A DNA stretch of 64,000 nt, from the NCBI GenBank assembly GCA_965637545.1, contig OZ281498.1, positions 20,708,001 through 20,772,000 on the forward strand, in the 5' to 3' direction. The notes under the pieces are model-generated. The model ran no database searches. It was given only the letters and a program-made list of their open reading frames with translations, and was not told where the DNA came from. Each line of letters begins with the position of its first letter. Position 1 is the stretch's first letter. Below, piece by piece: positions 21,418-60,100 of the stretch. The position numbers were made by a program, and so were the translations under genes. Source of the DNA: Phallusia mammillata (lineage: Eukaryota).

Positions 21418-21627
21418 CTAAAAATCGGAAAACTGTTCATGCATTTCGTGCATAATGTCAAGATGTAGAAGCAACTTGTTAAACATTTTGTAATCTTAAA
21501 AACTTAAACTAATTTTTGAAAGAAATTTTGATATTTTTATTTTTAAAAACAGTCGTGCTTTTAATGTAAGTCTAGACTAAAATCCTAAAAAGCCGAGCAT
21601 CAACGTTTTTTTGAAAAAAATACGGTG

Positions 21628-34600: not shown

Positions 34601-35791
34601 AGTATGGGTCGCGACCCAAACATGGGTCGCATAGGGTAAAAAAATGGGTCGCGCACACAATAGCCTTCCCACTATACTGTTTCGCACATGGCGATTGTAA
34701 CGTCATAGCACGGAAAATAATAGGATAAGTTAATCTTGCTATAACTGAACTTGGCCATGTGACAGTTAGCGTTAGAGTATGAGTAAGTATTCGTACAAGG
34801 AAATAAATACATTTTTTGTTGTTCGAGGCTTGGGTCGTGAGGTGTTTATAAAACTCAGATTTGGGTCGCGTTCAAAAACGTTTAAGAACCACTGTCTTAT
34901 AGGCAAATAAAAAGTCAAGTTACAAAGTATCACATTTTAGTACCTGAATTTATTCTTTTTATATTCCTTATAATATTGTTCCAGTCCCGTTGTCGATGTC
35001 GCCATACAATTCGGAAAAGATTCGCTTGAGGTCTCAGAGTCGCTAAGATTACGTTTTGCTCCTTTCCATTCTGGTTCAAACATTGGTTTGGTTCCGTCAA
35101 ACAGTTGAATCGAAGACGCAGCCCAATTTGGTAAACAATTCTTGGAAAAGTCTTCTGGACGTTTTGACTTTTGACCAAACTTTGATTTTATGAGAAGATC
35201 AGTTTCGCTACGTGCCTTTACTCTGTTGGTATGTAACGCCAAAGACCCCTTTCTTTCACGTTGAGCCATTTTGCCAGGTAGCTTGTTTGTAATATCAGTC
35301 GAATCTGGTTTCTTCAAATCCGTATTCACTGTAGACGTGTATACCGTTTCACTTTTTGATTTTGTCCCGTTTGAATACGTGTACAACGTTTCACTACTTT
35401 TTGAAGCATTGTTGGAAGTCTTGCTGTTAGTTTCTGCGGTTTTACTAGAATATACATCCTTCAGGCTCTTTCCAGTAACTTTGGGGACTAACGAAGGTGT
35501 AGATTGTGAAAGAAACTTGTTAGGCGTTCCACTAAACCTCAATTTTCTTCTTCTTTTCAAACTTCTTGGTGTAAGTTTCTCCTTTGCGGAGTATTTTCCG
35601 TAACTCGAAGAAGATGAAGAACTTAGAACATTCTGATATAAAGACGATCGCTTTTTGTAAACTTTTCGTTTGGTTCTGGTATTTTTATCACTCAAAATAG
35701 TCGGTAAGTCACGAATGGTTCCCGTTTTGTCCGACATTTTAAATTTTAGCCCTTCAATAAATTGCAAAAAAATGTCTACAATTTTCCCCAT
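21628..35791 (-). CDS. Giant low-complexity, largely disordered protein (~3,160 aa from 34160; ~3,440 aa if the 34944-35791 exon is joined)
   Basis: Phase-consistent GT-AG chain complement(join(21628-22695,23360-23562,24067-26522,27084-32186,32566-32735,33007-33215,33891-34160)) links all large minus-strand ORFs. Exon 34944-35791 (ATG 35791) ends in phase 2 while 34160 starts in phase 1, so an unplaced small exon or a separate gene is required. No family recognised. Confidence 0.7.
23021..23228. mobile_element. Degenerate, internally deleted relative of the 5360-5783 MITE
   Basis: agttgcaag...ggcccgcttgcaact termini and ttcgggcc motifs; no clean TSD. Confidence 0.6.
23360..23562 (-). CDS. 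Giant gene exon
   Basis: 203 nt, phase 1-0; ttttttctcAG acceptor, GAG/GTAAGC donor. Confidence 0.75.
24067..26522 (-). CDS. Giant gene 2,456-bp exon
   Basis: Acceptor ttttttatttcAG, reads in frame into the 771-aa ORF; donor GTAAGG; phase 2-1. Confidence 0.8.
26722..27058. mobile_element. hAT-type MITE with tgtcctc(c)tttt subterminal repeats
   Basis: Flanked by the direct repeat actttactt (26713-26721, 27059-27067); imperfect TIR aggcctaccata / tatggcct; about four gtcctc repeats; ends ~25 bp from the mega-exon donor. Confidence 0.7.
27084..32186 (-). CDS. Giant gene 5,103-bp mega-exon
   Basis: Within the 1728-aa ORF; acceptor ttgttttcAG at 32187-32188, donor CAG/GTAAAC at 27083; phase 2-2. 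Confidence 0.85.
32566..32735 (-). CDS. Giant gene exon
   Basis: 170 nt, phase 0-2, KRKPIDIKQNYEE...DDGTYK; donor GTATGT. Confidence 0.7.
33007..33215 (-). CDS. Giant gene exon
   Basis: 209 nt, phase 1-0, GNVISPESQPD...VEFQP; donor GTAAAT. Confidence 0.65.
33556..33790. mobile_element. hAT-type MITE (235 bp)
   Basis: TIR caagggtcggcaacc / ggttgccgaccgctg (13/15); perfect 8-bp TSD ttctattt; (g)cggacc(g) repeats. Confidence 0.9.
33891..34160 (-). CDS. Giant gene exon
   Basis: 270 nt, phase 1-1, GVPFYCDPRTNSPPG...SGLDE; donor GTATCA. Confidence 0.65.
34588..34894. mobile_element. hAT-type MITE (307 bp)
   Basis: TIR cagtggttctcaaa / tttaagaaccactg; perfect 8-bp TSD tcttatag; repeated tgggtcgc motifs. 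Confidence 0.92.
34944..35791 (-). CDS. Giant gene putative first coding exon (Ser/Lys-rich)
   Basis: ORF 34937-35791; donor TTCAG/GTACTA at 34943. It could instead be a stand-alone 284-aa ORF. Confidence 0.65.
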
Positions 35792-36127: not shown

Positions 36128-36176
36128 ATGGAGAGTGTGCATTGTGAGGACGTTTTGGACACATTTGCTTCAAATG
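36128..36176 (+). CDS. COG5: COG5 exon 1
   Basis: [16 protein letters not shown] + G, donor GTAAGT, phase 1. Confidence 0.75.
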
Positions 36177-39100
36177 GTAAGTTTGTATTGTTTAAAATCT
36201 TGGTATTTTCAACAATCAGTAGTTAAACAAACCTATAAACTTTAAGTTGTGTTTGGCTCAGGAAAATGATTACCAAAAAGTTACACTGGTGTTTTGGAAA
36301 ATCAAATGTTGTTTACCAGCTTCCTTTGTTTGCAAAAAAATACTTCAAGTACACACTTCTCTACTCTGCTGAAAAACAGTAATCATAAAATAGAATGAGT
36401 TTAATAAGCACATACATTCCACCTAAATGTCTAAGTGTACAAATAGAAGTGATAACCACTTGCAAAACAACCTCTTTTTGACTTGACATACATGACCTAT
36501 GTTTATGCTCTATAAACTCCATGTTTATGTTTGTTACAGATGTGCTTTCAGATTTTCTAAATGATGATTTTGAAGTACAAGAATATGCTACAAATGTCAT
36601 TCAAAGTGCTGCTATATCTCAACGTCTTGCTCAGCTTGTCGATGGAATTAGCATGTTGGACAAAGAACTGCAGTCACAGGTTATTTTCATAATATATAAA
36701 AATTAACGCCTGCATAACTACCAAGCACAACTAATGTATGCATAAAATCTTTGTTTCATAATACATTCTTAAATTTACGCACTATTGATATTACAAAGTC
36801 ATAGGCATGTGAAAGATTGAAAACTGTATATTAACATGCATTTCATCCAAAATAATACAAATCAATTTCAATACTATTCACTGTGTGATGAAAACCCAAA
36901 GCGTTGATGACATGTTTGTAGTTGTATGGTTGGTTTGTAATAGTGTATATATATTGCAGATTGCATCAAGACATGAAGATTTACTTGCACAAGCTACTGG
37001 TATAGAATCTCTTGAGGGTGTTTTGACAATGATGCAGTCCAGAATAAGCTCACTGCAATCAGCAGTAGATAGGTATTCACAATGTTATCACCTCAAGCAA
37101 AAACTTTGTTTGTGAAATTGGATCTTGCCATTTAAGGCTTGAATGCATTATCAGAAATGACTTGATTTAGGCACCTGTTGAAGGTTTGTGTCCCATCGTA
37201 GAATATATTTTCCCGTGCTGAATTATAAACTTGGTATTCAGGCTTGATTTGGCATTATGACCATAGGTTTGGCATACAGTGACTCAATTCAGCGATTAAA
37301 TATAGAATTCAGAGATTAAATACACTGGATTAGGTCAATTATCATAGTTTGGTGTAGAAAAAACAACGTAAGTCTGTTAAGTTTTGTGATATACCTAATA
37401 TAAGCAGTAGAACAATATTTGTATTCATATGATGAAAGTTATCCAATTATGTTTCAGAATTCGAAGCAAAGTTGGTGAACCTTTTCAGAAAATCAGTGCT
37501 CGGACAATACAACTAGGACGATTGCAGGTAAGAAGGTTCATTATTGGAACAATGCAATAAACATTAATGGCAAAATGTTAAAGGGGGTTTAACTGCAGCA
37601 TATTCTACAATTTATTTATGTGATATCCTGTCTGTTCTGCAAACTTTAAAGCATGGTTGCATTATGCTGTTCATTAGCCTTGTTATGGTTTGTAATATCT
37701 TTTATCGTTGGGAAAATAGAACAGCCCAACTGTTACAGAATTATTTTGGTAACCTCGAAATTTAGAGAAAGTTGTTCGGGTGCGAGATCTTTAACGCTAA
37801 ACCTTCCCAACTATCCCGATTGTATTCTAACACTCGAGGCTACCTCCCTAATTCGTAAAACGGTCCAAGACCCTGCACTAACGGCTTATCGCTAAAACCA
37901 ATTGTTACAACGGTGACTTCGCTACTGGCCAAAAATAATATATATTGTAATTAATAAAACCTTTGAAAGGTACTGTTCGATCACGTTACGTCACAGCAAT
38001 AACCACGTTGCACTATAGCAAAACACAATAACAACACAACAGCACCAAAACAATCGCGCACACTTCACCGGGGCCAGGAGAGAACTGCCACACCAAACAC
38101 AAGGAGAAACGACGTCACATGCCTCTAGGAATGTGACCAATCACAATGCGCCACGGGAAATCACTAAAGCGGGGATGCGTTCGAAAAGTTACCGGTGTAA
38201 AAGTACAAATAAAGATATTAAAGTGAAAATGGGTGAAAATGGAACACAAGAAAACAAAAGTAAAAAAACAAGAAGTGAAAGGAATAACGTGAAAATAAAT
38301 ATGGCTAAACAAAACAAACAAACATTATGAAACAAAACAACTAATATATTAATAGGTAAATAAAGTTACAGTGAAAAGCAAGTGCAATAATTAAACATTG
38401 AATCAGCGTATATCAAACGAAATGAACACAGTGAAACACCCATATATCGATAGATAAATAGGTTTACCGTGAAAATCAAGTGCGATAATAAAACAATAAA
38501 TAAGCATATACCAAACTAAGTGAACACAGTGAATAAAATAAACTAAGTGAACACCGGTTCACGTTACACAAGCTGATGTTGCTCAACAATGTACAGTAAT
38601 AAGGTGATAGAAGTGTAATGAAATGTTGTTCATATGGCTGAGGTAGTATTTGTGTGTACAAACAATGTGCAGACAAGGTATATTTCAAATTTTTGTGCGT
38701 ATTATATATTTTTTTTGCTGTTAAAATTACGTAATTTTCGTTTGTCTGTACATGCTTTGTTCCCAACTTTTTTTCTTAAATATTTTTGTCACCAGGTAAC
38801 ATGTGATCTTTTGAGAAGAATCATTCGCATCCAACGCTTAAGTAAGCGACTTCACAGTCAACTTCAAGGGGGAATAAGAGAAATCACCAAAGCTGCTCAG
38901 AGCCTAAGTGAACTAGGTAAGTCGAATATTTTTTTTTTACAATTTTAAAATTCACAGTCAGTTGTTTGTTCAATGAAGCCCATTCTTTATATGGGTCTCT
39001 AATCAACAAATAAATGAATGGTGGTTTTTGTGATCATCTCTGGTGACAAAATAGTTGCGAAAATCCTGCCACATGGTGGCATTGTCGAGTAAAACTTGTT

Positions 39101-42100
39101 TTCCATACATTGTCAATTAAAAAACGGTTTCATTTAGTTTATAACTCTCCATTAAGATTTTACAATACAGATTGTCAGAGGTTTTGAATAATTTTCTTGT
39201 AGCATTTGTCCATCTAAATTTTAACTTTGTGTATGAAAGATTTGTCAACAAAAGTGTAAAAACCAGAAAAAAAACTTGTTTGCAGTTTGTGCTGCTTTAT
39301 TAAAGTCTAGCCAAAACATTCTGTTTTTGTTTTTTACTGTTGTAAATTAAAATAAAATAACGAGTTCAAACCACAGGTTAACTACAATATTTTGTTGCCA
39401 TTTTTGTATTGACATCCAAAAAGGTAAAACTTACGCATCAACAAAAAAACGCCAAAACAGCGCCAAAGGAACACCACAGTGAAAACAAAAAATGAGCGCA
39501 TAAAACACAGTGCTTAGTCCAGCGCACGTGTTCGATTTTCAATGTCAAAATCATGGTCTAATCCTCGAAACGGGGCTGCGTTGTTTGACACTGCGTGACG
39601 GTGAGTAAGCATTAATTATGCAAGCCTATACGATTCGCTGTCGAATTTTAAGAGCATTGCTGCCATTACCATTGATCTAAGACTGCTGTAGAGCGACAAT
39701 TGGGACAATGGATGTGCACAGTTATGTGGTTTTGCCCTATTGGCCTTGACAATTTCAAGATGTGGTCCTGTATATCAAGATCTGTCGTTTTAAACACCTA
39801 GTGTATTTCTTTTGTACATTAGCATTGGAAAACACACTTGGGTGCACAGAAGTTGTTTTTTACGTCGTTTAAGGGTGATAACGACAATATTTTTGCGCAA
39901 AAGTAACAAAATAAAGAGTTTTGTAATGCTAGTGAAGAAATATACAACTTACATAACGACTTTGGCATGGCCGTAACATAGAAGAACTGAAAAACGGCAA
40001 TTTATAAATATGGCGTCAAAATAGGAATTGCAACAAATAACTCAAAAAAATGCTGCGTCGTTTCATTTAAACATGTTCTATTACTGATAAAGTTGACTTA
40101 GTCAGTAATTTTTCGCTTGTGTCATGTCCCGATGAACTGTCGTCATTTGTGTTCATTCTACAAATCTTATCATGGCGTTTACAATGTGCACCAGAGGGTG
40201 AAGCAGTACTCCTTACCCTATCCCGTTGTAAATTTGCTTTGTTTCGACCCCAGGGTGAGCTCCAAATGGCTGAGACCCGAATGCGACCCCGGGAATTGAT
40301 TGGAATTTGGTTTTTACCCCGTTTTGTAGCACACAGCACCTTGAGGTCTTTGCGAATCTTTTCGCGTGAAAAACTGTACAGAAAAGGGTTAAGGGTGCTT
40401 GTAACAGCCGCCAAGGCAAGACTCCATAGGAACGCCGTGTTCCAAATAAAGTCTTCTTCGCATTTGCTTACGGTCGTAAAGCGAAAAGGCATGTTTGTGT
40501 TATTGACAGAGCATTGTACTTTTGAGCAAATGTCCGGCGTTTCGTCATATGTCAATAAAAGGAATTTTGCCACCGGTAGCGCATGGAACGGAATCCAACA
40601 TAACAAAAACGCTAGTAGAATTAGGATGGTCATTTTCCGTAAATGCCTCATTCTTTTCCGTTTTTCCTTCATTTTTGCTGCCACCATCCTCTTCAACGCC
40701 AGCACAACGGTTATAGAAAGCGCTACCGACGCAAAATCGGTCTTGCATTCCGAGAGTTTACGTTGCGCTGCTCCGTTTTTCGGTGCGGAAAGCAATTGTG
40801 CTTGTGATCCAGCGAGACTAGCTTCTTCAACGCTGTTTTGTTTGGAATTTTCCAGCGATTTTGGTGGTGTTTTGTTATAGTTAACGCTCTGCACTATAAT
40901 AGGTGGCGGTTTCTGCTGATTAATATCAGTTGGTTTTATTTCCGCCATGTTAATGTCGCTATCTGGTTTTCCACCCCATTTCCAGCAGGTATGACTGCGC
41001 AGCGTAAAGTTGTTGTTCTTTTTGTTGTTGTTTTGCGCTTTGCCGAACTGCTGGCCACCAATCTTCTTGGCATGTCTGTGAACAAGAAAATACGTTTGTT
41101 TACTATAATTATCCAAGCACGATATGGTTTATTGGGTAGAAGTATTTGGCATCTGCTTTTACACAGAAGTGCACAAATACTGTTTACCTTGGTTTTGTAA
41201 CTTTTTAAAAAAATGTTATGTGGTTAGGTGGAGTATTTGCAGGTTTTTATTGTAATAAATAAATAAAGGTGTAAATTTATTTTTTCTTCTAAACGTTATA
41301 GACAAGCATTTTTTCCCTATTTTGAAACACGGCTTAATAAATACCAATAAATATAAATATCAATAGTAAAAAAAAACATGTGTAAATAAATTTAAAGAAT
41401 TAAGAGTTAAACAAACATGTTTAAAAAAAGAAACAAACATAAATAGACCCTGAGTCGAGATTTTAATATTTACATGTACGCTTAACACTTTACTTTAACC
41501 TACATTTTTGAACTATTCATATCATTGCCACTTTTTCGATTGCTTACATTTATGGTAGTTTTTCAGAAACTAGGGTTTGAACAGGTTCACATTTAACAGT
41601 AACTAATTATATGGCGCTTATCTATCCCAGATACTTTATCTGGGCTACTTAGCCGTCATGACAAATCGTTAGCCACGGTAAACACCTCGTCTCAAGCGTT
41701 CAATCGGTACAGAAATCAATGAAAAATCGACGTGGGGCTAATTGAACCGTAAGCATGAACTGACTTGACCTGTGGTAACCCTTGTCACATGTCAAGGCGG
41801 TGACGTGTCCGTTTCCAGATAACACTGTGATTGCTAACATCCTAAATGTAACAATCCCGCGTTTATGTTGAATATCTTAACAGTTCGTTTCAGTTCGCAA
41901 GACGAGATTGACAAGAAGAGTGAACACTTTCAAGCAGGGGTCACCAACCTTTTTTACAGCGGGCCGGATACTATTAAAATTGATTTGCGAGGGCCACATA
42001 GCTTACAAACCCTAACGTAACGCCGTTCCCAAAACTTACGCTTTTGCAGGACCAGCACGCTACAATCTTACTTAGAGTCTGATAGTGCTACTGTTAAATA

Positions 42101-45100
42101 GTAAAATTGTGTGGAATAATTTTCTCCGCTACTGGCCATACTCATTTATTTCATCACAATTAAAAACGATTTGTATTTGCCTAAAACAAAGAATACATCA
42201 AAACTTTTTTCAATGTAACAAAGCTGCTTTCGGAATGTTTTATGCGTTATGTGAAACTAGTTGAAATTGGTCCTACATGTTGCCAGGGGAATACTTTCGC
42301 AATATATTAACTGTAACTATAAACTCAAGCATATTCTAAGAATAAAGGCCAAATACTTTCTCGGGCTGGATGAAATGACGTTAAGGGTCGTAGTTTGGTT
42401 AGTGGTGACCCCTGCTTTGAGGCAATATTGCGTTTCTAACCTTTTTGGTAATAACACAATCCTGTTTTAAATTTATTAACTCTGTGGACGCCCATGTATA
42501 ATTGCCCCGTTTTTGAAATAAAAAATCTATAAAACTTTGGCATACACCACTTTTAACCTTCGCGCGAGCTTATCAGGAGCGTGCGAACCCCGACTGCATC
42601 AAACCATTCGATAACACGCTTAATTTACTTGTAGCGTTAATTAGGGGTTATCCTACATTTTTGCGGCTTTGGAAAACATTGCGATGGGCGCAACCACTGA
42701 TCCGTTACATTGACTTTTCTGTAAATTTGCGCAACTTGCATAGAATTCAACTATATTTTGTCCATTGTATTTTGATTGACGTGTTTAATGTTTTTCGCCT
42801 TTTAAAAAAGTTATTTTTTGGTCCCTGTATTTCCTTGTGAAAACTTAAATTGTTTCTAAAACGTTCGGTGAGCAATTGTTTTGTGTTTTGAGTTTTCATA
42901 GGTTGGTTGTTGCTTTTGGATGTATTTTTATAGTCTATTAAAACAGAATGTTTCAACCATTATTAATCTGCATTTTCACAAACAGCCACAAATTAATTTT
43001 CTTCCCATTCAATGCAAACGGATAAAAAAAATGACAGTCACACAGGGCAAATGCGTTTATAGCAAGAAAAAGTCACTGAATTTAAGATAAGTTACGGCAG
43101 TATTCAAATTGTCCCAGTAATCGCAATGTTTGCTCCCAGTTGGAGAAAAATGCTGTCTGGTACAACCTCCTTGCTTATAAATAATTCAGTAGGTTTTCCT
43201 AACGGCGAAAAACCATTAAAACATGGTGATTTTTCTTTTTACATTGCCGACTGGCTGTACGACAAAGGCCATAGCGTCAAATTTCAGATGTGGATAATTT
43301 GAATGAACAAAATCTGCGTACTAGCATTTGGAATGACGTCGTAAATGTTTAATTTGCCTTTCATGCGAATCACTCAGCATTTCGTAGACCGTGACATAAT
43401 AATTGCGTGACAATTTTTCTTCACTGTTTTAAGTTGGAATTTTTGACTTTTAAATCAATCCGCTGCGTTAACTTCATCGGATGGAAAATATGGAGGTGCT
43501 ATGTTTAAAGGGGTAAATTATATTTCTATGTTTTTCTTTCAATTTTATGATCTTTACGGTTAGGATTGTATAATTATACACAAGGGCTTCTCACAGCTCT
43601 GCTTAAAAAGGTAGTTAGGGGAACCCGCTCTAACGAACTGATAATGTAATGATCACGCAAAACAATACTGAATCACATAACTCTTAAATAGATTGACTAA
43701 TCTTAAATTCTCTTTACATGAAAGATGAAACAACTGCGTTTGTTAAAACTTTTCTAAAAATGATTTTTTGAAACGATTATTCTTGCGCCTTTATTACATT
43801 TGCAGCTTTGCTCGTTACAACGTTTGTTGAAACGTGCGTAAAAAAGATATTTACTAACTACAATTTCTACTGCAGTTGTGTGTAAACCTTATTTCAATAT
43901 CCATGCCATAAATTTTCAGTAGCCTAAATCTTGCTTTACAATGCTATTACGCAGCACTTTAAAGGGGCAAGAGATAAATTTAAGCAGCCTTTTGCTCAAC
44001 GATTTTATTTTAGGATTGTCTTCAGTCAAGCTTGTCCTATGTTGGCACTGGAACCACTTTTGTACTTTCTTGCCATTAAAGCGGCTTAGATTTCGCCTCC
44101 TGATGCGTAAAAAGGTTTATTTGGTTTCCTTAAACAAGGTTAAATGTGACTTTTGTATGTGCAGTCGAATGGTTTTTAGCCAGCATTTTAATAGTTTGGA
44201 CATGAACACTGTAGCTGCATATCAACGCAACGTTTACGTAAAATCTTAAGTTTTTCTGACATGTAGTAGTTGTATAGTGTTGAAAACCCGTGAGGCAATT
44301 TACTTCGGATTTGGCATTCTTTGGATTCCCCCCCCCCCCCCCCCCCTAAATAACTAAGAATATTTTGTTTTCCTTCCCTTGCTTTTCTAATTTAGGTTTG
44401 ACGAACCTGTATTAAGGGTTTGTCAGATGTCCTTAAAACTTTCTGGCATATGTCAAAATTTAGCGAATTATGGATGTATGTAAGATTAGACTTAGAGTAT
44501 AACGTAATGGCTGGGATTATCCTGTTGTTCACCAATTGTTTTACCCTTGGTTAACAATGTGGTATAAGTTTTAACGATTCAGAAAAAAACTTTCAGTTAC
44601 CTGTAATTCCGTTGGTGAACTGAACGCAGAATCTTCAGGTACACGGTTATAACGAGCACGGCGGCCACAAGAAAAATCGTCACTTGAAAACCGACTTGTA
44701 GAGACAAATCCAGTTTATTTAGTTGGCACAAATTCTTCCAACAATCTGCTGTACAAGTCACTTCCTTAATGTCTCCAATCCTTTTTAAGCTTTCCCCAGA
44801 CAATGAGGACAAGGATATATTCTTTAGGCCTTCATTTTGCTTGTAAACCCCATCATATTTCAACATTGACAGCAATGGTACTATTGTTGTGGACAAGCAA
44901 AGCAACCACATCATCCAAATAGCAACTTGTGGTCTTCGTTTGACGAAAAACCTCTTTGATGGTCGCAGGCTGATGTCACCACGATCCAAGGCTAAAAGTG
45001 CCGTTCCGGTGGCACTTGCAATTGCCAGAAATAGTAGAATGCTTCGGTCAGCAAAACATAAATTGTTTAGGTGCTTTCCAGTGCTTAGAGGCAGCAGTTG

Positions 45101-48100
45101 CGTTGCTATGGTTACAGGAATAGCGACTCCGCAAAGGAGTAGGTCCACCACTGCTAAGTTGACCTGCGAACACGAAAAGTTACAACATTTAATGCATGTG
45201 TTTGTGTTCAATGTACAAATGAAAAAAAAAAGTTGGAAAATAAGAATTCTGTCAGAACACTAGACACGGTCTTTTCAAGCAGTTTGATTAAAATAAAACT
45301 GCCTGAAACACTGCGTGTTATTTATAAGTTTCATTTATAACAAGTGGTGTTATTCATCAGTAGCCCCATGCCCGTCTTGTTTTGATATTATACGAGTTTG
45401 GTACGGGAATCCCTGATGATCGATGAAGCTCTTTCTAATGTACCTAGAAGGGGATTTAAAAAAAAAACTTTATGTCAGTCAGCTGAACCACGCTTGTTTG
45501 GTACATACATTCACTGCTTCGAGCAAGGATATCTACTAAATTTCCAGAAATTTAATCGAACAGGAGTTCCAATTTCCTTTGGGAAATTGAGATTTTCCGC
45601 AGAGGTTTCTTGAGCTCGTCTACTTCCATCTTTTACGGGTTTTAGGAAAACAAACAAAGGGATTTAAAAGAAACTATTCGTTCACGTGGTTTTCACCTCG
45701 GTTCAGCCATTTTATTGAATATAAACTTGTGACCTGAAATCTCAATTTCCCGAGGGAAATTTGGGATTTTCTGCAGGGATTTAATTGTACTTGCTTAGTC
45801 CACTATTTTACAAACAAGAAAAACAACTGAGGAATGGAAATAAAATCCTTGATCTTATGTTAAACTCAGATCATCGAAATTCAAGTACAAAGCAATTGAA
45901 TTTTTGTTGCAGAACCTTAGTTGATTTTGCCCCATGACGCATTGGATTGACAGACGCCTACGTATGTGACGTCATATGTGACGCAAACCTTCAGAAAAAT
46001 GAGTTACGTTTGGCTATTGACATTTTTTGTATCATTATTGGTGAAATTTGGGGGGTTTGTAAAGAAGGTTTTATTGTTTTTGTTCAAGTTTTGCGTTTTT
46101 CTTCACAAATTAGCAATACCCAACAAAACCCACAAGGGGAGTAATTAGGATTAAAAACTACAATAGAATAGGCTTTGTGGTGGAAATAGCTATAACTGTG
46201 AAGAACAATTGACTTTTGAGGACTAAACACACAATCTTATAGCGTCAGTGCCGCTAAAGCAGTGTGTTCGTTCATGCATTCAAAGTGTAGACAAAATTCC
46301 AATCTCAATTAACCTATTTTTGTTTTAAATACACAAATAACAAAACGTAAGGTTTGCCTATAATTTTTTTTTAACAGATTTTCTCTCAGGAATTAGAATT
46401 TTTCTCATAGTGAGCGAAGTTCCTCCCGTTTTAGAACCAATGGTTTAGTCAATTGATCTTTGCTCCTTAATTACGTCTGTAAACTTCCGAGTTTCCTAGA
46501 CCTATTGATCGAGTGGCAAAACCTAATGCGCTTCCTCTTCGTGGGGGAAATGCGAATAACAGATATGGACGGATTAAGTCTGAAACTTCCCTGGGTTTTG
46601 GTAAAACATAATTAGGTGAATTTACCAAGTCAAATTAGGACACCAATGTAGCTGAAGCATAGGGCGTTAAAACAGATAAACGTAGCGGAAATCGTGTATG
46701 TAACCTGTTGTAAAATACTTTTGCAAGCCCATGCATAAAGGTCAACATTAAGTAGATGACTGGTTATTATTGTATATTGATCGATAAACTACCATAAATA
46801 ACAGAATTTATTAACATAATCAGTATTTGTGTTGCGAAAAACTAAGTTCATATCTCTCACGTACCCGAAAAGTTTTTATTCGAACCTGTGGTAAATGATT
46901 TTTAAGCCCTAAATATATTAAAACAAGGTAATACTACCCAAACCGTTTGTTTCGTGTGTTTTTTGCTGCGACAAAAAGAGGTCTGCAAACCTAAGGTCAA
47001 GACTGTAAATCACACAACTGATATACGACCACTTATAGCACTGATAACGGCATGAGCATTTGTCGAAACGTTTCAATAACAAAGTATGTGGTATTTTAAT
47101 TCTATTTGGGCCGTTCTATTCGTCATTAAGCATATGAACAGATCCGTGTATTGTGTTCCATTGTATATCACATATCGTTCAAAACATCAAAAACTAAACT
47201 TACTGTGAATAAATTCCCGGCGTTGTTCAACAAAGTCCTTTTCCGCAAGTACAACATCAGGGTGACAAGGTTGCAAGCCAGACCCGAAACAGCTTCGAGT
47301 GCAAGCAACGCCAGGGGAACGCCCTCGTAGATACGTAGTTGATTGACCCCTTGGGTGGAATGTTCCATAATAGGTGGCTGTGGCTCTACACTGGGGGCGC
47401 CCCTAAACCCTGTGGTGCCGTTTGGGGCACAGTCTTTGCAGAAAACCCGCATAAATTCCATCGTTTTGTGAATTGGTGGCGTGTTTTTGATCAACGTGAT
47501 TGCAACATAGTGTAGGACGTTTTTTTGCAGTTATTAACCGACCCTGTTGTGTTAAAGGAGTCTGTAAAAAAAGGAAAAATTAACAGATATAATTACGACT
47601 ATGGGTAGTCTGTTGCGATTCTCAGTTTGTTTGTTTTTTGACTCGACGTGTAGTGGCGTTTTATTATGCTTGACAATTGCTAATCTTTCACGATTATACA
47701 CAGCGAATTGTCATGTTGTGTTTTTACATTTGGCTAGTAGTGGCAGCTTTCCTTCAAACTTGTTCTGGCGTTTCAATCCTATACTTGCCGGGTAGTCATG
47801 TTTTGCCTTCAAACTCAACTCATGGTAGTGGCGATTTACTTCTATACTCGCCGAGTAGTAGTTAAACTCGGCGTATAGTGGCAGCTGGCGTACAAAACTT
47901 GGCGAGTACTGGCGTTTTACTCTCATTTTTGCCGAGTAGTCATGTTTTCCTTTCAAACTTGGAAAGTAGTGCCGATGTATTCTCGCAAGTAGGGGTGGTT
48001 TTGATTCTAACCCGACAATTTACGCCCATTATACTCTACGGTATTTTCTTTTATACTTGACAATCTGCAACCTTTTGCCTTCTCACTCCTCGTGTTATGT

Positions 48101-51100
48101 AGCTTTCGCACTTATTTGTACACGAATGAACTAAACATAACTGCCACAGAATTGTACATGTCTATAACTTTTTGGGGTCTAATAAAATTTTTTATCAGAG
48201 CCATAAAAGTGCAACGTGCACACTGCGTACAAGCTTATTGATATTCATGCTGTCGTACAAGTTTTGTCCCCGAATTTGCAAGATCTTGGAACATGAACTC
48301 GTACGCAAGACCACAAAAATGTTTGATATTTTAGACATTACTCTAGAACTCTATACCACATATAACGTTGTTACACCTCCCTCTACTCCAAACGCTTTGT
48401 GGCACTAAACCGCTGACTCGGCTCGTAAAACAGCAAAATCGCGTTTCTTAGTCAACATTCAAGCAAGTTTCTTGTTTATCGCCGAATATTGTCCTATAAA
48501 ATTGTTTCAGACGACCTGAAAGTTTTTCTTCATATTGTTTCGACGCAGTTTTTACTTACACGGCCTTGTCCTCTTTAAATTTTAAACATAATTTCATACA
48601 TCGTCACATTTTAAGTCTTTACTGTTCACTGAACAATCTCAGTAACACGAATGTTCTTATTTCCTTGACTTGTTTTTACCGTCACGCCTCAGTACTCACA
48701 CCTAAAGGTGGTCATTCCCAGCGCTTAAGAAAGCGATACACAACTATAACCAAGAACTGTTGCCAAAATTTAACAAACACCGCGCTGCTCGTTTGACTGT
48801 AATCGCTAATCCCCCAAGCGCATTAACCCACCAGTCGCTGGTCTTCCGCGTGGTCACGTGACTTACGGGTTCGATATTGAATCGATTTGTCGCTTGCCGA
48901 GGCGATTAATAACCGGCGCTTTTATCCAGCGCCTGTAATTGCTAGGGAGACCGCTCTGTCGCCTTGCCAATCGATTGTGTTTGTTTTTCCAGATTGCTGT
49001 CCCGACGGTGTTTTGCGATGATTAATTTTGTTGCAAAAACACCTAGATTTAAGTCCGGTCGAATGTTAATTGGTACCCAATCTTAATTGAACCCCGTTCT
49101 GCTAAAGCTATGGATCAAATATAATATATAAAAAAATACATAACGATTTTTTATGCATTCGCAGAATAATTTGGTTAATCGCATAATTAATTATTTGTTT
49201 ACATTGAATTGGTTTAGAGCCAAAGTTAAGGATTTTGGATAATCGCATAAAGCTGCAATCAACTATTATACATTAGCTTACCTATATCGTGACATTGAAC
49301 ATCAAAACGATGTGCTATTTAAAACCAGATAAGTGCATTTCTCCTAATGCATTCCGTTTAAAATAGCATCGGTGGTACCGTTGTTATATTGATCTGATAT
49401 ATATATATATATAAAAAATAAATTTGTAATACGGTTATCTGTTTTCAGAACCGACCCATTAAAATCTATTCCCACAAACAGAGATTTTTACTGCTAGTTT
49501 AGTACAAAACGTATTTAGATTTCCTGTTTGAAACAAACGAAAGCTTACATGTATAAACCAGCTTCAAGGCAAAGTGTATGCGTTAAGCGGCGAATTTGTT
49601 TGCAAATGTCATAAAGAACAACTACGCGCTATGTGAAATCATGTCAGGCCTGTTCAAGGTGCCACACAGAACTTACCAACTCAGTATCCTACCAACATAT
49701 ATTATCATATTTCTAAACAATCCGTTTGCATGCACACAGACAGTTTTATTGTCGTTTTCCTCACTAAAACCACTGTGGTTAATATAGTGGCTTATTATGG
49801 TCTTCCGTCTCTTTTGGCCGCAAGGCGCTTTCAACAACCTAAAGTTCCTGATCTGACAAACAAACCAAATTTATAGCGCTTGTCGATCACTAACGCAGTG
49901 ACCCTGGGCAAGAACGCAACCCGAGTACACGGAACTTCCAAAGTTTGCGTCATAAAACCCTCCTTATAGGTAACAATGATTGCTTCCGAAAACAGAAATT
50001 TTATTGTGTTTTGTTAACCTTCAGCAATCACTGTTTATTTCATCGAGTTACACCAGTTGCAACATATTATTAAAATTTTCTTCAATATAAGTACCCTTTC
50101 TAATAGCAGTGTGTTAATCACTTTAAATACTGCTTATGAACTAATATAAATGTCTTAACTATATGTTGGGCATTCACTAAAACTATTAGGTAAAGAATTA
50201 CATGTCATAATGATATTTAACGTAAGCTTCTTGGCATTTAATAATTAGTAGCTTTTCTATAGACATATTAAAACCCATCAGCTCCTAACAAAAGCTTCGT
50301 TCTTTGTTAGTCTTGTGTTGCATAGGAATTTCTCAGAAAAAAATAACTTTTGCTCCTCAAAGTTTGTTTTATTTGTCAGTAAAAATTAAAAACTAATAAA
50401 AGTGCAAAACATTTACTGAAAACATAATCAATAACATAACTGACTTGTTTCAACCAATTTTGCAAAGTTAGCCAACATTCTAATCATCTACGAAATCTAC
50501 GCTTAATAAAAACCAATCAATTTTTGTCACCTTATTATTGTATAACATTTTTTTTCTAATTGATCAACTTTGATGCGACTTTTTCAAAATCTAGGCCTTT
50601 TGCATTCATGGTTAACAGTTCAAAGTTTACTGTACAAAGCTCGGTTAAATTATTGAACCCGAGCCCGCGAAGTTGTTTAAAAAGCCACTCATCATGTCAA
50701 TCATATCACTGTCGCAATATCTCTATAACACCGGCTATCAATCAACTTTAAAATAGGCAGTCTATATAGTCACTGGAATCATAAACAACGTCCGGCCGTC
50801 GCTTAAGCGCAAAACCGTAGAACCTTGCTCAATTCTAGACAAATATTGGTACTTAGCAAATATACGCAAGTGCTTTTACGTTAGCTGACCTGCCTGGAGA
50901 CTTGAGACCTTCTTAGCGAGCTGAATTTATCGACGTTATAAGCGGAACAGATGTGTTGCCGCAAAACCGCAGTCTGCCCGACCTGAAGCATTTACTTCTG
51001 ATGTGTTAATTAAGGGAATGGTGGCTTTTATTTTTAAATTTACTTTACCCTCCAAAAAGTCATATTCAATTTTTGAGCTCGATTGTGTTCCAGTACTTAC

Positions 51101-54100
51101 GTGTAATTTGTAAAACTACTTTGTATAATAACCACTAGTATACCAAATTTTAAAAAACTATAAATGTGCATCCAAATTCTAATGCTTTTTGAAACAATTT
51201 TTATACAATTGTTGCACTTGGTGACATAGTGCATTCGGAATCGCAGCATTTACCAGTTTACTTGCGCTATGTTACGTCATAATCAACTTGAATGAAGTAC
51301 CAGAAAGCTTCGGTATGCAGAAATTGCTTGCAAATTGGCCGTTTATTAAAATTAAGATGCAATTTTCTACAGGTTACGTAAACATTTTCTATACAATGAA
51401 ACAAGATTGTTTTAAAACCGGATCTTATAAGCGGGTTGCGAGCTAGCTTCGTGCAGGCAACTCTGAAACGACTCACTAAAAGTATTTCTCGGACAACATA
51501 ACAATTCTGTTCATTTTGCTGCATAATTTTCGTTTTTTATAATAGTTTGCAATCAGATAGTTTAAACAGAATTGTTATCCCTATACAACATTCAACTAGT
51601 ATCTAGTTCACGTAAAAATTGTATACCTAAATGTACATTATACTTTTTAACGTTGTGTTGATTCAAGCAACCGTCAAAGTTACATGCCTCGATTATTAGT
51701 TCTTGAGAATATATAGTTTACAATTCCTACTCACCTTTCTGGCTGTTTGTTTAGTATCGCTTACATTTTTTGAAAAATAATCGTAACATGACCTGCAGAT
51801 TTGTCATGGACTCGCCTCAATTCGCAAGCTCTTTCCTTCTGACAGCGCCTTGGCCCAGCGCGTCTAGCGAACTAAAAACCTGTGCGTGTGAAAAAGGTTT
51901 TCTTATCCCAAGTGTTGGTCGCTGCTTCCCTTTTTCGCTTGGCATCTGTGCTGCGGTTTGTCGAAGGTTCGTTTAGGGAAAAAATGCTCTGTATCGTAAC
52001 GCACCAGTTAACGCATACGTCCTGGTGTGTTTCTGATTAACATAGAAACTCCATGTTTAATTATGTTTACTATGTCCAATTTTGCACAGCTGAAGCGTGT
52101 TCTTACGAGATTTCTTTTGACAACCGTGACTTTTACCTATTTTAAGCGCCTTTTTCCTTGCTGTCTTTATGTTGGTTTTATACGCTTTAATCTAGGGGTG
52201 GGCAACCTTTGTCACTGTGGGGCCAAATACAATTGCGATTACATCCCGGGCCGCACCTTTATATCACACAAATGTGATTTTGCTTCGTTGTGTGCCAAAA
52301 ATGCCGTATTACAAGTAAAATTCGCATTTGATTCTAGCAGCATATTGTCAGGTCGCAGAAAAATAGCACCGGGCGAACTAATCTGCTCAAAAAATATAAT
52401 AATTGGTCTCTTTTGCCAGTACATTTGAAATCCCAGTGTCTCTGCGGGCCGCACAACTTCAATCAATGGGCCGCAGGTTGCCACCCCTGCTTTAATCGGT
52501 TTTGTTTAACCATTTAAAAATTAAAAAAAGGCCGACCAAACTGCCAACTTGAAATTTTTCTTGAATGTTACAGTCACATTGCTTGTTGATTTTAACGTTT
52601 AACAAAATGTTCAACAGACAACAGAAACAAAATTTGGAAGTTTGTTGAAAACTTTGGCCATTTTTTGTAAGTCGCCCCGAAAATGTGCTTTCTTTTTGGT
52701 ATGGCTTTGTATTGTAACACACACTGTCTTTATCTGGCAACAGTCTTATGTGAGACTCATTGAAAAATGAAATGAGAACGAGGGATATGCAACTCAAATA
52801 TTAAATTTAACTTGATTAAAAGGTCTGCTCAAACCATCGCTAGACACACGTTAAAAAGAACTAAAAGGTTTGGTAAATTTAGAACCGTCCGCGGGTCGCA
52901 CTCTAATTGGGTTATCTTAGTCTAAGTTTAAGACTGTCCTAACCATAGACCAGCATATTCACAATTAGCTTACATCTCAATCGATAAATCTTTAAATCTG
53001 GGCCTTGTTTGTCATCCTCAAATGTTTTTGTTCGCAATCTCACGTACACAAAAATCCAATCATGTCAATCATATCCTTCTTAAGAATTTTGTACTTGAAT
53101 TTAAGCCCTAATCAAAAAATAATTGATTTTAGCGAAAGGACCTAACATGGTTTCCTAACAATACTGTTGCTAAAAAAATTTGTGTTTTCATTTTAAAAGC
53201 TGTTTTCAGCAACAACGAAAATTTTGCTGAGTCTAATAACCAAACCAATATACCAGTTTGTTCGTGCAGCTATTGCTGTTAAGATATACTATGCAATTCT
53301 TTTTGTATCATTTTTTGCAAACAATGTGTTTATGAAGTTGTGCTTTAACTATAAACATTGTGTGGTAAATTTCAGAGGCTCCGATCAAGTTATAGTCCTA
53401 TTTAAACGGTTTAAACATATGTAAAAATTACCTCTATTTTTGGCCACGTACACGTCTATTTGATTTTGATTGATAAACTGATGATTCAGACGAAAAAAGT
53501 TACAAAAATGCAATATTTTGTGCAAAAATGGCAAAAATGACATAAGAATGATTTAAAATACTGGACTCAAAAACTTTTCCACCACATTTCGCTACCAAAC
53601 GACGTGCTTCTCGTTTTCAAAGGTTTTGCAAATTGGTAAACAGGTCTTTGTACAATGTGACTGCAATATTTTACAGTTTACACATTAATCTTCTTCAGTA
53701 GGCCCCTGTTCTATGTGCCTGATTATCAGACTTGTACAAACAAACTAATCTGCTCCTGGTTTCTAGAATACTTAGTAAAACCTGTTTCGTGCAGGTTTTC
53801 GAAATTAATAACCCAAAAGCTTTATTTTACGACTTGTGTGGTAATAATCCTTGTACCCTGCCTGTTGCTTGGTGGATGAAGACTAATGAGCCTTAAGATT
53901 ATATTTGAACTGATGATCCTTTCAAAGAGAAATTTATATAAATATATACACACACATATATATATATATATTAAAATCGTAAGGACGAACGACTTAACGT
54001 TTTTCATGAACTTGCTCGGTAATACTTAATGGCACAGAATGCTCTAGGATTCAAGTTGATTTTTTGCATGTTTTACTCTAAAAACAAGGATTAACTGCTA

Positions 54101-57100
54101 AAAAGGTGAAAAATGCCCTTTTTCTGCTTCAAAAACTGAGAAATCAAATCGCCTTAACGAAATTTCGAATAATAATAATATTATTTCATGTTGTTTTTCA
54201 CGCCGTATTTTTTTCACACAAAACATGGTATGAGAGCGTGTGGAGGCGATAGGCTTCGGTTCAGGTTGAACATTGTACGCAAGCAAAGTTATTGGACAAG
54301 TCTCATATATTTGCTTCTCAGAAGTTTCTACGCAATAAAAGGTTTACGAGTTAACACACAAGCGCTTCCTCCTTGCTTCTATATCAAAACCATGCTTTGA
54401 GCAAACCCCGTAGGAAATGCCTTTTCGCCACTGTCTTGTATCATAAAATGTCCAAACGATATGTTTCTTCTGGTGCACATATAAAAGTTCGTGGTGGTGG
54501 AACATCTGATGTAAAATCCTTACGCGAAAAACTTAAACTTTAAGAACAATTTTCACAAAATGTGCGACTTCTTGAACAGTCGTATTGCCGTCCATAAACG
54601 AGACTATACTACCTAAAATACTAACAATTGCCCGTTTCCGTTAAATTTATATGGCGTCACAATTCAGTATTATGGTGCAACTGTTGACTCCTGACGTCAT
54701 TGAACAAATTACGACATGTCCCCATTGGACATATATTTCCACACATGAATTTGTCTCGTTATTTGTTGTCTTGTCCTGGCCTCGTTGGTTTGTATTTTCG
54801 TTGTCATGTTTCGCAACACAAAATTGTCTATTGTATACTCAAACAGTACAGAAGTATTTTCGTCAATCGCAGTACGCCAGGCCAATTGGACGCGCCATAC
54901 CGAATCAGCCGGTCACCAAGCACCACCATATGGCATGGCGTAGGCTAGAAAAATCTGGCCTGCGGTGGGATTCGAACCCACGACAGGATTCTTTACGGTA
55001 CGCGCGCTCTACCAACTGAGCTACACAGGCTCAGTTGAGAATTTGCCGAAAGTTAAATCATAAGCACCGTTGCCTACCTCGTATGTTGTACATGTCAGCT
55101 TCGTATGAGGGGATCGCCAGATTGACCAGTATCAGTTAAGATGAACACAAATTCATGACTGACTGATTCGGTATGGCGCATTCATGGGCCTGGCGCACTA
55201 TGATTTATACATAGGTCTGCCGTGATCGCTGGTCTTATTAGACGTTTCAGGGCTGATTCCAGTTATGAATTTATGTTCATCTTAACTGAAGTGTTTTCTT
55301 GTTTTGAAGCGATTTTCAATTCCTACTATCTCACACCGTTGTTGGCCAATGCTTTGATTAAGGAAAACTTCCAACCATTCCTCGAACTTCAGTTAATAAT
55401 AAACCCAGGACCCCATGAAGTTGATTTCAAAGTCGACAAACTTGCTAGACAGCTTTTAGTGCAAAGAAAGTACATTACTTGTTATTATCAACAGTGTAAA
55501 GCGGGAATGTTTTTTGGACGCCTGTAGGTTCTAGTCTTAAAATCTTACAGCTTATCTTTGTATTCAGATTACCTTTCGCAAGGAATTGACTTGAGTGGAA
55601 TCGAGGTGATAGAGAATGACCGGCTGTTTATTCTACGTGCGAAAGACGACGTAAAAGCACAAGCGTCCAAACTTCTCGATCAGGGCATAGCTTCACTGGT
55701 AGGTGGAATTCATACAGTTCAACTGATAACGCAACAGCTTATTCGTGGAATCATAAGTTTTCACAGAAAAGGGGTATAAAGTTAAATTTGTTTTATAAAC
55801 GTAATTCCGAAACCAAACGAGAGCCCTATCCCACTTTCAACTATGGTTCTAAATACCAGCTTAGGAATAAATGTTTTAACGGGGTACTCTTTTGTGGTCT
55901 GGGTAATGATTGTCAAAACGAAACTATTACTTCAAAAATTTACAAAGTAAGGTCTAAGTTAGCAAAATCAAATATGCAGTCGGATTTAAAACCATGTTTG
56001 TGTTTTATTCGCAAATATGTTTTCCTGGTAATCAACTGAGTTTAATTCACAGTATTCAACGCATTTTGGGTTCGTTTACTGAAATAATTCTGAGAAAAAT
56101 CGCCCACCCTAACGTCGATTGACGTCATAATTACTACGCAACAAAGGGTTATATTTGCTCACAGACACAGCAATCAAATTGAACGTTGGTTGAGTGATGT
56201 CTAACCTTTCATTTACTCAGCCATCGATATACCAGACTGAAAAACGTGCCCATACGCAAGATTCCTGTTTTGCGTGGTCAGTAAATATCATTGCCCAAAG
56301 TGGAGTGCAAACGAGCTATATGTACAACGGACCGTAACCGTTGTTTTTATAGTTTAACAGAACATATTTAATAAAGTTTTTTGTATTTGATGTCTGGTTT
56401 TGTACCAGTATGTCTCTCATAGTGTTTCTGTTGGGTAAAAGTTTGTTTTGTGGCCAATACCAATTTGCCGTTATTTACAATTATAAACCGGATTCTATAT
56501 TGGTTTGTTTCTGTAAATTACTTCCATTCCAAATTTAACTGTTTTCTACATTTTCACCACACAAACGAAAACAGTTATATTTTGCAAAACAAGTATTTTT
56601 GGGCCTATACAACAAAAGCTTTATACGTAAGCATTCACCTACTCTGACGTCAGCATTTGTGTTTTGAATGATGCACAATCGACGTACGTTTTTGTGCAGT
56701 AGGCTTAGAATTGGAAACCAACGTTGATGTTTTCATTGTCATTGTCGTACGCACGCATGGACGCGTTTGAAAGGGTAAAAATATCTGCCACTGTTGTGCA
56801 TGACAACATAATTTCTTCCACATGCAGTTGTGCGAGGAAACCGTTTTTGTTGAAAAAGTTTAATGAATCCTTAATTTTGTTGTAGGTCGCCTAAAAAATA
56901 TGCAAGACATAAAACAAAAGATCACAATTGTATAGCAAATATGGAAGAAGCATTTTTTTTAATATAAAGACATTTTTAGACAAAGCTTTGACATATTACA
57001 AGCTTGCCAAATCGGTTTTTTCGCGTGTATTGTATGTTATATTACAAAGTGAAGTCGTGTAGGGCTTTTCGGGTTGCATGGGGTTTTTGAAAAACGCGAA

Positions 57101-60100
57101 TTCAAATTCCGCTACATTTGCGCTGTAATTTCACTTTCCGTTGACAAAAGTACATGTGCACAAGGTGTGTATTAATTTTTGCGTGGAACCTTATATATCG
57201 CAGACCTTTATCGGACGGGCTTGCACTTTCGGGTTTGCCATAAAATTTCGGCACGCTTGGAACAGCAATCAAATGGGTTGTAAACGTAGTTTTACGCAAG
57301 ACAGGTGTATATAACCATTTATGGTTGATATAAATGCATTGTATCACTAAAAATCGCATGAGCATTTGCCGAAACCTTTGAAAATAGTACGTGTCGCTTA
57401 AATCTGGCACATTATACTTTATTATAAAAAAGTATGCAACCTAAATGCTGTTAATTGAATAAAGGTTATGTGGCCCGCTGAGACGATTGAATTTAAAATT
57501 TTGTGTGGCCCGCTACACTATTTTAGTGCGATTTTACTGGTACTCAGTAATCAGTATACACGTGTTTGATACACGCAGTAAAGACAATTGTATAGTATAA
57601 AGACGGGTCCCGCTGCCTTATTAATTATTTTATAGACACTGATTAATAATTGCACGCCGTTTTTGCAGTTACATTCAGGCACTTTATTTTACTTAATCTT
57701 CCAATAATTGATTTCCGATGGGTTTTTCATTTATTTTAATCTCTGTGTATTTGACAAATCTTAATGACGTTTAAGTGTTACAATGAAAAATATTTGATTG
57801 TTTAGATAACTGCTGAATTTGTCGAAAGCTGTTTTCTTGCATCCAAACATGCGGTAACAGATAAAATCAGATTTTTGCGCTATGACGTCAATATCACTAT
57901 TTGCGACGTAAATTTTAAGTGACCAACATGAGTTAGAATTTAATTTGGATTTTAAAATGCCAAAAATCGTTACATATTGTAATATTTATCCAGCTGTCAT
58001 AACGTAACTTGAGCTTTTAGTGACGTCACGTGGGAATAATTTATCAAATCTTACCATTGTGACGTCACTATTAGGCCATGACGTTTTTAGTTTTTTTCAT
58101 TATGACTAAATACAAATTACTCAATAAAAGGCGTTAGTGCACTCGAAAACAAGTCTATCCATCCGGGTTTAATCGCACCCTTACACTTGGAGAGCCACCA
58201 AGATTTGCATGCAGATAAACTTGCACGATGTTATGAATAATTCAACAGCTACATGCTTTAACGCGTTTCGCTGTATGATTGACGTGACCTTGGGTGACCC
58301 GGTGTCACGTGGAAGGTGAAACCGCTATTCCTAAGAGCGTTTTTTCACCACCCCTAATGGCCTTGAAAATGGTTTTAGCGGTTTGGATGCGTAGATTTTT
58401 TTTTGTTTTTTAAGGCCGGTTTAATGACGATTTGGCATACTTGTTTTGAGTAATTATGGTCTATTTTCAATTTAAAAAAAATACTGTAACCCCAAGAACT
58501 CAATAGGTTAACAGGGTTACTTATGTTTATCTGTCGGTTTATTTCCTTCAAGTTTTTGATGTTTACTATTGGCAATGTAAACATGGCTATTTGCAATGTC
58601 ATGTATTGTATGAATACTGCATGTATAATTTACACTTTTAAAACAAACAAATAATTTCTGTTACAGAATCAAACACATACGGCAACTGCCCTTCAAGTGT
58701 ACTTTAACCTCGGCAGTCTGCGTACACCTGTCGATGACGTGGTGATGACGTCACGTGCCGCAGTAAAGAGAAGCATTCGTATGGCGTTGGACACAAACGT
58801 CATCAGTCAAACTTCGAACCCTACACAAGTACCCAAAGGTAAAAAATATAGCAAATGCTTTGGTTTGCGTTTGGGTTGATGCAAGTTTACAACCGCTGTC
58901 ATATTGTTCGTGAATGTGAACTCACTAATGTAGCAGCTGCTAGCATCTGTTATTTCACCAACACGCGTAAGTAAGCTTTTATACCACCACGGGCTAGAAT
59001 CCACAACAAAAACCCAGTGCAATTTCTGGATTTTGCATTGTTTTAGCGCTGGGTTTCAACCGTTCGCCAAGGGGTAAAACAAGTTGTCGTTTAGTTGCTT
59101 AGGGAACAATGGGTCAATTGGTGGTTAGAACTACAAATATTAAATTCGCATTACTACTTAAACAGCAGTCACATAATCGAATTATCGTTTTCACAGGTCC
59201 CGGAAAAGCGGGGGGAATCCCCACACCTGGAAACAGCGCCATGTTTCGTGTCGGCTTGTGGAATAACATGGAGACGCTGATCGACCAGATCACAAGTGTT
59301 TGCAATCAGGTTGGTGTGAGAAAAGATGCCTGTTTGTAACCGTTATCTTAACTCTTAGACTGTAAAATTTTTGTTTAAACTTTTGGCGGTTTTGTTAAAG
59401 AGGTATTGTGTCTTCCTATTCGTCCTCCAAACATACACCTGTATGTAACATATTAACTCAACACCAACGACTTAGCAAGGATCTGTTTATAAGTCGAAAC
59501 AAAGGTCCACATAGACAATAAAACGCCATACTTTATTTTCAAGCCTACGGGTAATCGGAATAAGATCACATTTGCCAGAAGAGCTCTACAAACTTGATAT
59601 TATGCCTGGCAGCAATAGCTTATATATCTACAGGGTAATGTTGCATGCACGTATTGCCCCGTATTTTTATATATTTAGAACCGTGTGAGTATTTAGAAAC
59701 CCAATTAGGCAAATGCTCTTGCCATACTCTGTGATCAGTCATATCTGAGCCTTAATATTTCTCACAAGGTTGAAGCTTGTTCAACACCTTCTTAAAAATT
59801 TCGTATAATTCTTAATCCACCAAACGGGGAAATAAATTCACGGTTGACTGCGCAAATCTTATTCCCAATTTGCTTGAACGTGACTGCAATTACCACTTCA
59901 CCACAAATCGATTCAATTTTTTCTATCAAATTGTGATCAATAATCATCGTGTCATAATGGGACGTGTTTTTGAGTCCACTTTCATCCATTGTGCTAAACC
60001 ATGCCACATGGCGATCCCCTGAAGTGTTTGTGCTCGGATTGTGGATAAACGTCGCAATTTCGAGTTATTGATTTCTTGCTGACAATTTGCTACGTTGATT

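Follow-up and report, generated by a model that had tools for sequence, protein, structure and literature searches.

Why should a gene for an orphan receptor remain inside an intron of a gene for a Golgi tethering subunit in genomes that scramble gene order? The question is raised by a locus of the tunicate Phallusia mammillata, analysed here as a window of 64,000 nucleotides (assembly GCA_965637545.1, contig OZ281498.1, positions 20,708,001 to 20,772,000 of the forward strand), which contains no N and beyond which the 3' part of the host gene, COG5, extends. Intron 5 of COG5 holds, on the opposite strand, a receptor gene that can be assigned to the GPR22 family. Tunicates and vertebrates probably both received this nest, a GPR22-family receptor inside COG5, from their common ancestor, and it has probably been kept mainly by passive, structural retention. 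An earlier note, made from the letters of the window alone, had described the arrangement and proposed that a functional link, such as shared enhancers or transcriptional interference, holds the two genes together. Its description of the locus stands in the points considered below, whereas the proposed link is unsupported.

The limits of the host intron can be read directly from the splice sites (a slash marks each junction). The upstream exon ends at G38916, in ..AGT GAA CTA G/GTAAGT, and the downstream exon starts at 55568, with /AT TAC CTT TCG CAA GGA; hence the intron is in phase 1 and splits the GAT codon for the Asp of SLSEL-D-YLSQG. The interval of 38917-55567 given in the earlier note is therefore exact, and comprises 16,651 nucleotides bounded by GT..AG. 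Its numbering as intron 5 is also correct, because a short first coding exon was located at 36128-36176, with counterparts at the 5' ends of the annotated COG5 genes of Ciona and Clavelina. Introns 1-4 and 6 measure 363, 280, 385, 1268 and 2968 nucleotides, in agreement with the '~0.2-3 kb' previously estimated for the other introns of the gene. The host is identified as COG5 by the order in which matches to the Pfam domains COG5_N and COG5_C follow one another across exons 2, 3, 6, 7 and one later exon: COG5_N positions 1-53 and 52-91 match the upstream exons, while COG5_C positions 1-35, 36-87 and 155-186 match three downstream exons in collinear order. The COG5 exons of the window are 48-92% identical to the annotated COG5 of Ciona, Clavelina and Styela. 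The features of the host gene are as follows.

36128 to 36176, plus strand: COG5 coding exon 1, ending in phase 1; the same peptide is found at the 5' end of COG5 in Ciona and Clavelina.
36540 to 36679, plus strand: COG5 exon 2, matching Pfam COG5_N 1-53; splice sites read; 84% identical to the Ciona exon.
36960 to 37072, plus strand: COG5 exon 3, matching Pfam COG5_N 52-91; splice sites read; tblastn matches in other tunicates.
37458 to 37527, plus strand: COG5 exon 4; splice sites read; tblastn matches in other tunicates.
38796 to 38916, plus strand: COG5 exon 5, ending in ..SLSEL and the first base of the Asp codon; 82-92% identical in five other tunicate loci.
38917 to 55567, plus strand: COG5 intron 5, the host intron; 16,651 nucleotides, phase 1, GT..AG.
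55568 to 55698, plus strand: COG5 exon 6, opening with the other two bases of the Asp codon, then YLSQG..; matching Pfam COG5_C 1-35; tblastn matches.
58667 to 58838, plus strand: COG5 exon 7, matching Pfam COG5_C 36-87; read directly.

The receptor gene is complete, as had been claimed; it lies on the minus strand, wholly inside intron 5, and has canonical splice sites. Spliced by script, its three coding exons yield 609 codons closed by one stop at the end. Between its ATG and its stop the gene covers 44% of the host intron, and its 3' end is 1.15 kilobases (kb) from COG5 exon 5. A Pfam scan of the other open reading frames of intron 5 gave zero matches, revealing no second recognisable gene. 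The coding exons, with transmembrane helices numbered TM1 to TM7, are the following.

47204 to 47461, minus strand: receptor coding exon 1, encoding the N-terminus and TM1; ATG at 47461; donor ACA/GTAAGT, phase 0.
44601 to 45163, minus strand: receptor coding exon 2, encoding TM2 to TM5; Pfam 7tm_1; the query of the exhaustive search.
40067 to 41075, minus strand: receptor coding exon 3, encoding the third intracellular loop, TM6, TM7, the C-terminal tail and the stop; Pfam 7tm_1.

Both Pfam matches exceed the cut-off of 30.5 bits, with 31.6 bits for exon 2 and 35.8 bits for exon 3. The landmarks of class A receptors are present in the form of an N in TM1, a D in TM2, CWIP (the CWxP motif) and NPFLY (NPxxY), and the DRY motif is replaced by DRG, a substitution found in all nested tunicate copies.

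In the database searches the receptor exons were used one by one rather than as a spliced query. When the peptide of exon 2 was searched exhaustively by phmmer among 1.84 billion cluster representatives, 17 proteins were found at E <= 0.001, and no class A family other than GPR22 appeared among the matches at that threshold. Ten of the 17 are tunicate proteins or unnamed exon-sized fragments, the former including Ciona intestinalis XP_002127820 and proteins of Clavelina lepadiformis and Styela clava, all annotated as 'uncharacterized'. Four of the other seven are vertebrate proteins named 'G-protein coupled receptor 22' or '22-like', and the remaining three, an 'uncharacterized' protein of Silurus plus two fragments without names, are each placed with members of the GPR22 family in trees. 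When the spliced receptor was compared with 138 vertebrate GPR22-family proteins, phmmer scores reached 130.8 bits, with a median of 110. Scores against all solved G protein-coupled receptors, among which most of the well-studied class A receptors are represented, did not exceed 32.7 bits for the Ciona orthologue and 34.5 bits for exon 3 of the window.

Alignment with the vertebrate members reveals four motifs of the family: DR[YG]DIS[VL][RK]P..R after TM3; a basic stretch leading into TM6, one form of which reads ALRRAV.RRHRDRRERQRRVFRM; [HN]P.LY.F[TS]R[QE]K at TM7 and helix 8; and a similar C-terminal D.[TS]..[CL]LT. All four are present in the receptor, the change from DRY to DRG being the sole departure. 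A tunicate-specific class A receptor that had come to resemble GPR22 by chance or convergence might account for an identity of only 25-27% to vertebrate members of the family, for the DRG, for the two introns of a gene whose coding sequence is intronless in three of four fish loci, and for the two unnamed mollusc clusters that stand slightly above the GPR22 cluster by features in the ESM Atlas. Such an origin is nevertheless hardly credible, given that the matches outside the tunicate and fragment group are either named GPR22 or GPR22-like or group with that family, that the scores lie 55 to 95 bits above the best solved receptor, that the shared motifs extend past the generic class A positions, and that the genomic position matches that of vertebrate GPR22. 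For the Ciona orthologue, the Atlas cluster 'G-protein coupled receptor 22' ranked first by structure and third by features. The exhaustive search, bit scores, motifs and Atlas cluster uphold the assignment to GPR22 made in the earlier note; on these sequence comparisons, the view that the receptor is an intact tunicate member of the family is well supported, and vertebrate GPR22 and GPR22L most likely share the tunicate gene as their single pro-orthologue.

The vertebrate sequences in this comparison belong, according to the trees, to the GPR22L subtype and allied fish-specific clades, the set being without mammalian-type GPR22 and class A outgroups. The subtype was defined for gar, fishes, coelacanth, amphibians, reptiles and marsupials in a 2019 survey (Sci Rep, PMC6504862). 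Two homologue searches started from fish proteins yielded GPR22L-type sequences throughout the best 120 matches of each, with mammalian-type GPR22 not among them. Exon 2 had no match in the PDB, where a GPR22 structure was not found, and recovered generic class A names only from the Atlas; a word-index search with exon 3 returned one Logan fragment only. The two mollusc clusters, of class A and with lengths of 500 and 433 amino acids, rank just above the GPR22 cluster by the language-model features of the Atlas and are absent from the exhaustive search with exon 2 at E <= 0.001; they are a possible lead to protostome relatives.

The tunicate sample comprises six genomes including the window, and the named species represent all three ascidian orders, Phlebobranchia, Aplousobranchia and Stolidobranchia. 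Contig look-ups show that in Ciona, Clavelina and Styela an annotated COG5 of 816-825 amino acids, with COG5_N and COG5_C, spans an opposite-strand orthologue of the receptor. In all three, tblastn with the COG5 exon peptides of the window places the receptor between the ..SLSEL and YLSQG.. exons, in host introns of ~6.6 kb (Ciona), ~4.6 kb (Clavelina) and ~14.4 kb (Styela). The same arrangement was detected by tblastn in two unannotated tunicate assemblies, ENA ERZ25067590 and JGI 3300027611, with host introns of ~10.2 kb and ~17.3 kb, respectively. Hence the same COG5 intron hosts the receptor in all six tunicate genomes, and the suggestion that the nest is old is borne out by this survey. 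The sharing of one host intron by three ascidian orders implies that the nest predates the ascidian radiation, which places it in the last common ancestor of ascidians.

The structure of the nested gene is equally constant, with a three-exon layout and both introns at the same alignment positions in all the tunicate loci compared. These two introns, shared by all tunicate copies, are in phase 0 after TM1 and in phase 2 after TM5, while the coding sequence of the fish GPR22L-type genes is uninterrupted. The introns may reflect an early gain in tunicates, or a loss in vertebrates, for example through a retrocopy origin.

For the vertebrates, human GPR22 is presumably antisense to COG5. The claim that vertebrate GPR22 lies within a COG5 intron is confirmed for the dog, in which a retrocopy 2.8 kb upstream of GPR22 is stated to lie in an intron of COG5 (PMC9635648). 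According to a 2026 preprint, exon 6 of human COG5 (NM_006348.3) ends at c.631 and the next exon starts at c.632, with an intervening intron of at least 33.9 kb. As c.631 is the first base of the codon for Asp211, the human intron is in phase 1. Its position relative to the tunicate intron can be judged from p.S186_K187delinsL, reported in the congenital glycosylation disorder COG5-CDG, which affects a conserved stretch of human COG5 (PMC3697985). In exon 5 of the window the split Asp follows the SK of RLSKRL by 25 residues, which added to 186 gives 211; as the spacing from S186-K187 is 25 in both human and window, the human intron falls at the same codon and in the same phase, a match that presumes no indel between human and tunicates in a stretch where tunicates are 82-92% identical to one another. 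The boundary of c.538 given in the earlier note is consistent with these papers, as it equals c.631 minus 93 nucleotides, i.e. numbering from Met32. Among the open-access papers searched, none was found stating which COG5 intron holds GPR22; human GPR22 probably lies, as the earlier note has it, in the intron that splits the equivalent Asp codon.

The alternative that the nest was acquired independently in tunicates and vertebrates, through two entries into COG5 or a move between introns, can be weighed against this correspondence. The sources found do not pin down the vertebrate host intron, the vertebrate family members examined are all outside COG5, and a tunicate duplicate described below demonstrates that members of the family are able to relocate. 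However, the receptor family and the host gene are the same in both lineages, as, presumably, is the antisense orientation, and a large human COG5 intron occupies the exact position and phase of the tunicate host intron. Two separate insertions of one family into one gene would be a very unlikely coincidence, and this alternative is accordingly given little weight. Inheritance of the nest from the common ancestor of tunicates and vertebrates, more than 500 million years ago, is most probably the correct explanation.

Two further observations concern COG5 itself. One exon of human COG5 stops at c.417, behind codon 139 (PMC13265530), and tunicate COG5 intron 3 (37072/37458) lies in the codon equivalent to 147, counting back from S186 and presuming no indel; unlike the position at Asp211, that of intron 3 thus seems not to be shared with the human boundary. 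A PDB search with the COG5 exon peptides found no metazoan COG5 chain.

Not all members of the family are nested. Four fish loci, from Betta, Amia, Pseudorasbora and Echeneis, hold intact GPR22-family genes outside COG5, in each case without a COG5 gene call overlapping the locus or a COG5 exon closer than 10 kb. The genes of Betta and Amia belong to the GPR22L clade, and those of Pseudorasbora (cyprinid-type) and Echeneis (a further fish clade) are allied to it; three of the four loci encode the protein without introns. Among the tunicates, ENA ERZ25067590 carries a second, divergent and lineage-specific copy of the receptor (7593-11778 of its locus), again with no COG5 exon within 10 kb, which has the same three exons and DRF in place of DRG. 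In the tree this copy is sister to the nested copy of the same assembly, with support of 99/99, on a branch almost three times longer. The proteins labelled P0009 and P0010 are of the same type as this duplicate. The existence of intact copies outside COG5 implies that the receptor can leave its host by duplication and stay intact.

What, then, has kept the original copy in place? If COG5 does essential housekeeping work, one rearrangement breakpoint close to the receptor would disrupt the gene, and exit of the receptor would need either two breakpoints in the same intron or a duplication. Regulatory sequences of the receptor scattered along the intron may reinforce this constraint. The two products, a seven-helix membrane receptor and a subunit of a Golgi tethering complex, would be expected to work independently of each other. 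Selection against breakpoints in an essential host would be the simplest explanation for the retention of the nest, and a sufficient one.

The competing explanation is functional coupling, in which shared intronic enhancers maintain the nest or antisense transcription of one gene tunes the other. Six tunicate genomes keep the receptor in one and the same intron although tunicate genomes are heavily rearranged, and the dog also has it within COG5; such retention speaks for coupling. Yet the GPR22L-type genes of Betta, Amia, Pseudorasbora and Echeneis, as well as the tunicate paralogue, lie outside COG5, and because these copies remain intact the receptor appears to be independent of its host and not to need it. 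To our knowledge no biology ties the Golgi tether to the GPR22 receptor, which also counts against coupling. When the window intron was compared with the other tunicate loci by blastn, receptor exon 3 alone was matched and no conserved non-coding block was detected, although this is a weak test because non-coding sequence is saturated at ascidian divergence. Coupling is therefore rather unlikely to be what has kept the nest. A stronger version, in which a chordate-wide or older nest is held by cis-regulatory or transcriptional coupling, COG5 harbours the regulatory landscape of the receptor and antisense transcription through intron 5 tunes COG5 in receptor-expressing cells, is doubtful; were coupling to operate, part of the osteoarthritis signal at human 7q22 would reflect it.

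Several points weigh against inheritance with passive retention as set out here. The trees hold GPR22-family members only and are unrooted by other class A receptors, the essentiality of COG5 in tunicates is assumed by us from other organisms, and the missing non-coding conservation is, being based on blastn, weak evidence. The sources found do not establish which COG5 intron holds GPR22 in human or dog. Finally, the retrocopy upstream of GPR22 in the red Poodle raised GPR22 strongly and COG5 slightly (PMC9635648), a point in favour of coupling, and this joint rise hints at a possible shared regulatory environment.

The locus is comparable with other long-lived nested pairs. TIMP inside synapsin is anciently conserved from fly to human, and is likewise a small opposite-strand gene long kept in an intron of a larger conserved gene; it involves other genes, and the conservation of the COG5 nest is seen in tunicates and inferred for vertebrates. 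The COG5 nest is a new instance of a familiar type of arrangement. No paper linking GPR22 to a tunicate gene, or describing conservation of the nest, was found among the open-access papers searched. The nearest known system is vertebrate GPR22 in COG5 (human 7q22 osteoarthritis locus; dog CFA18), which shares with the tunicate locus the receptor family, an intron of the same host gene and, for human COG5, an intron at the same codon and phase. It differs from the tunicate gene, which has three coding exons, a product of 609 amino acids and DRG rather than DRY. The host intron is also shorter in tunicates (4.6-17 kb) than the human intron at that position (at least 34 kb). Vertebrate GPR22L (PMC6504862) provides the closest relatives in the set compared, with scores of up to 130.8 bits and the shared motifs; these genes and their fish allies, lying outside COG5 and mostly with intronless coding sequence, contrast with the nested and intron-containing tunicate receptor.

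The arrangement has uses beyond its history. The orphan receptor GPR22 has been connected with heart function, with cilia and with the osteoarthritis locus, and is reported to be Gi/o coupled and constitutively active; the tunicate members of the family provide a tractable invertebrate chordate model, in Ciona, for its ligand and function. Occupying one intron throughout the three ascidian orders, and matched in codon and phase by an intron of human COG5, the nest can serve as a clean marker of the rare genomic kind. The locus also offers a natural experiment on why nested genes persist where gene order is otherwise scrambled: with the GPR22L-type genes and the tunicate duplicate as relatives outside COG5, passive retention can be set directly against functional retention.

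The surroundings of the nest offer some minor observations. At the Ciona locus (17412-23032), next after the gene upstream of COG5 comes a very long one whose product has 3,939 amino acids, and the wider gene order around COG5 may be conserved between Ciona and 21628-35791 of the window. Near the 3' end of the host intron, a dispersed repeat at 54865-55282 has a second copy in the window at 8213-8379, with 85-91% identity. It carries an Rfam tRNA match on the minus strand at 54957-55030 (47.3 bits), where ARAGORN calls no tRNA, and looks like a tRNA-derived short interspersed nuclear element (SINE).

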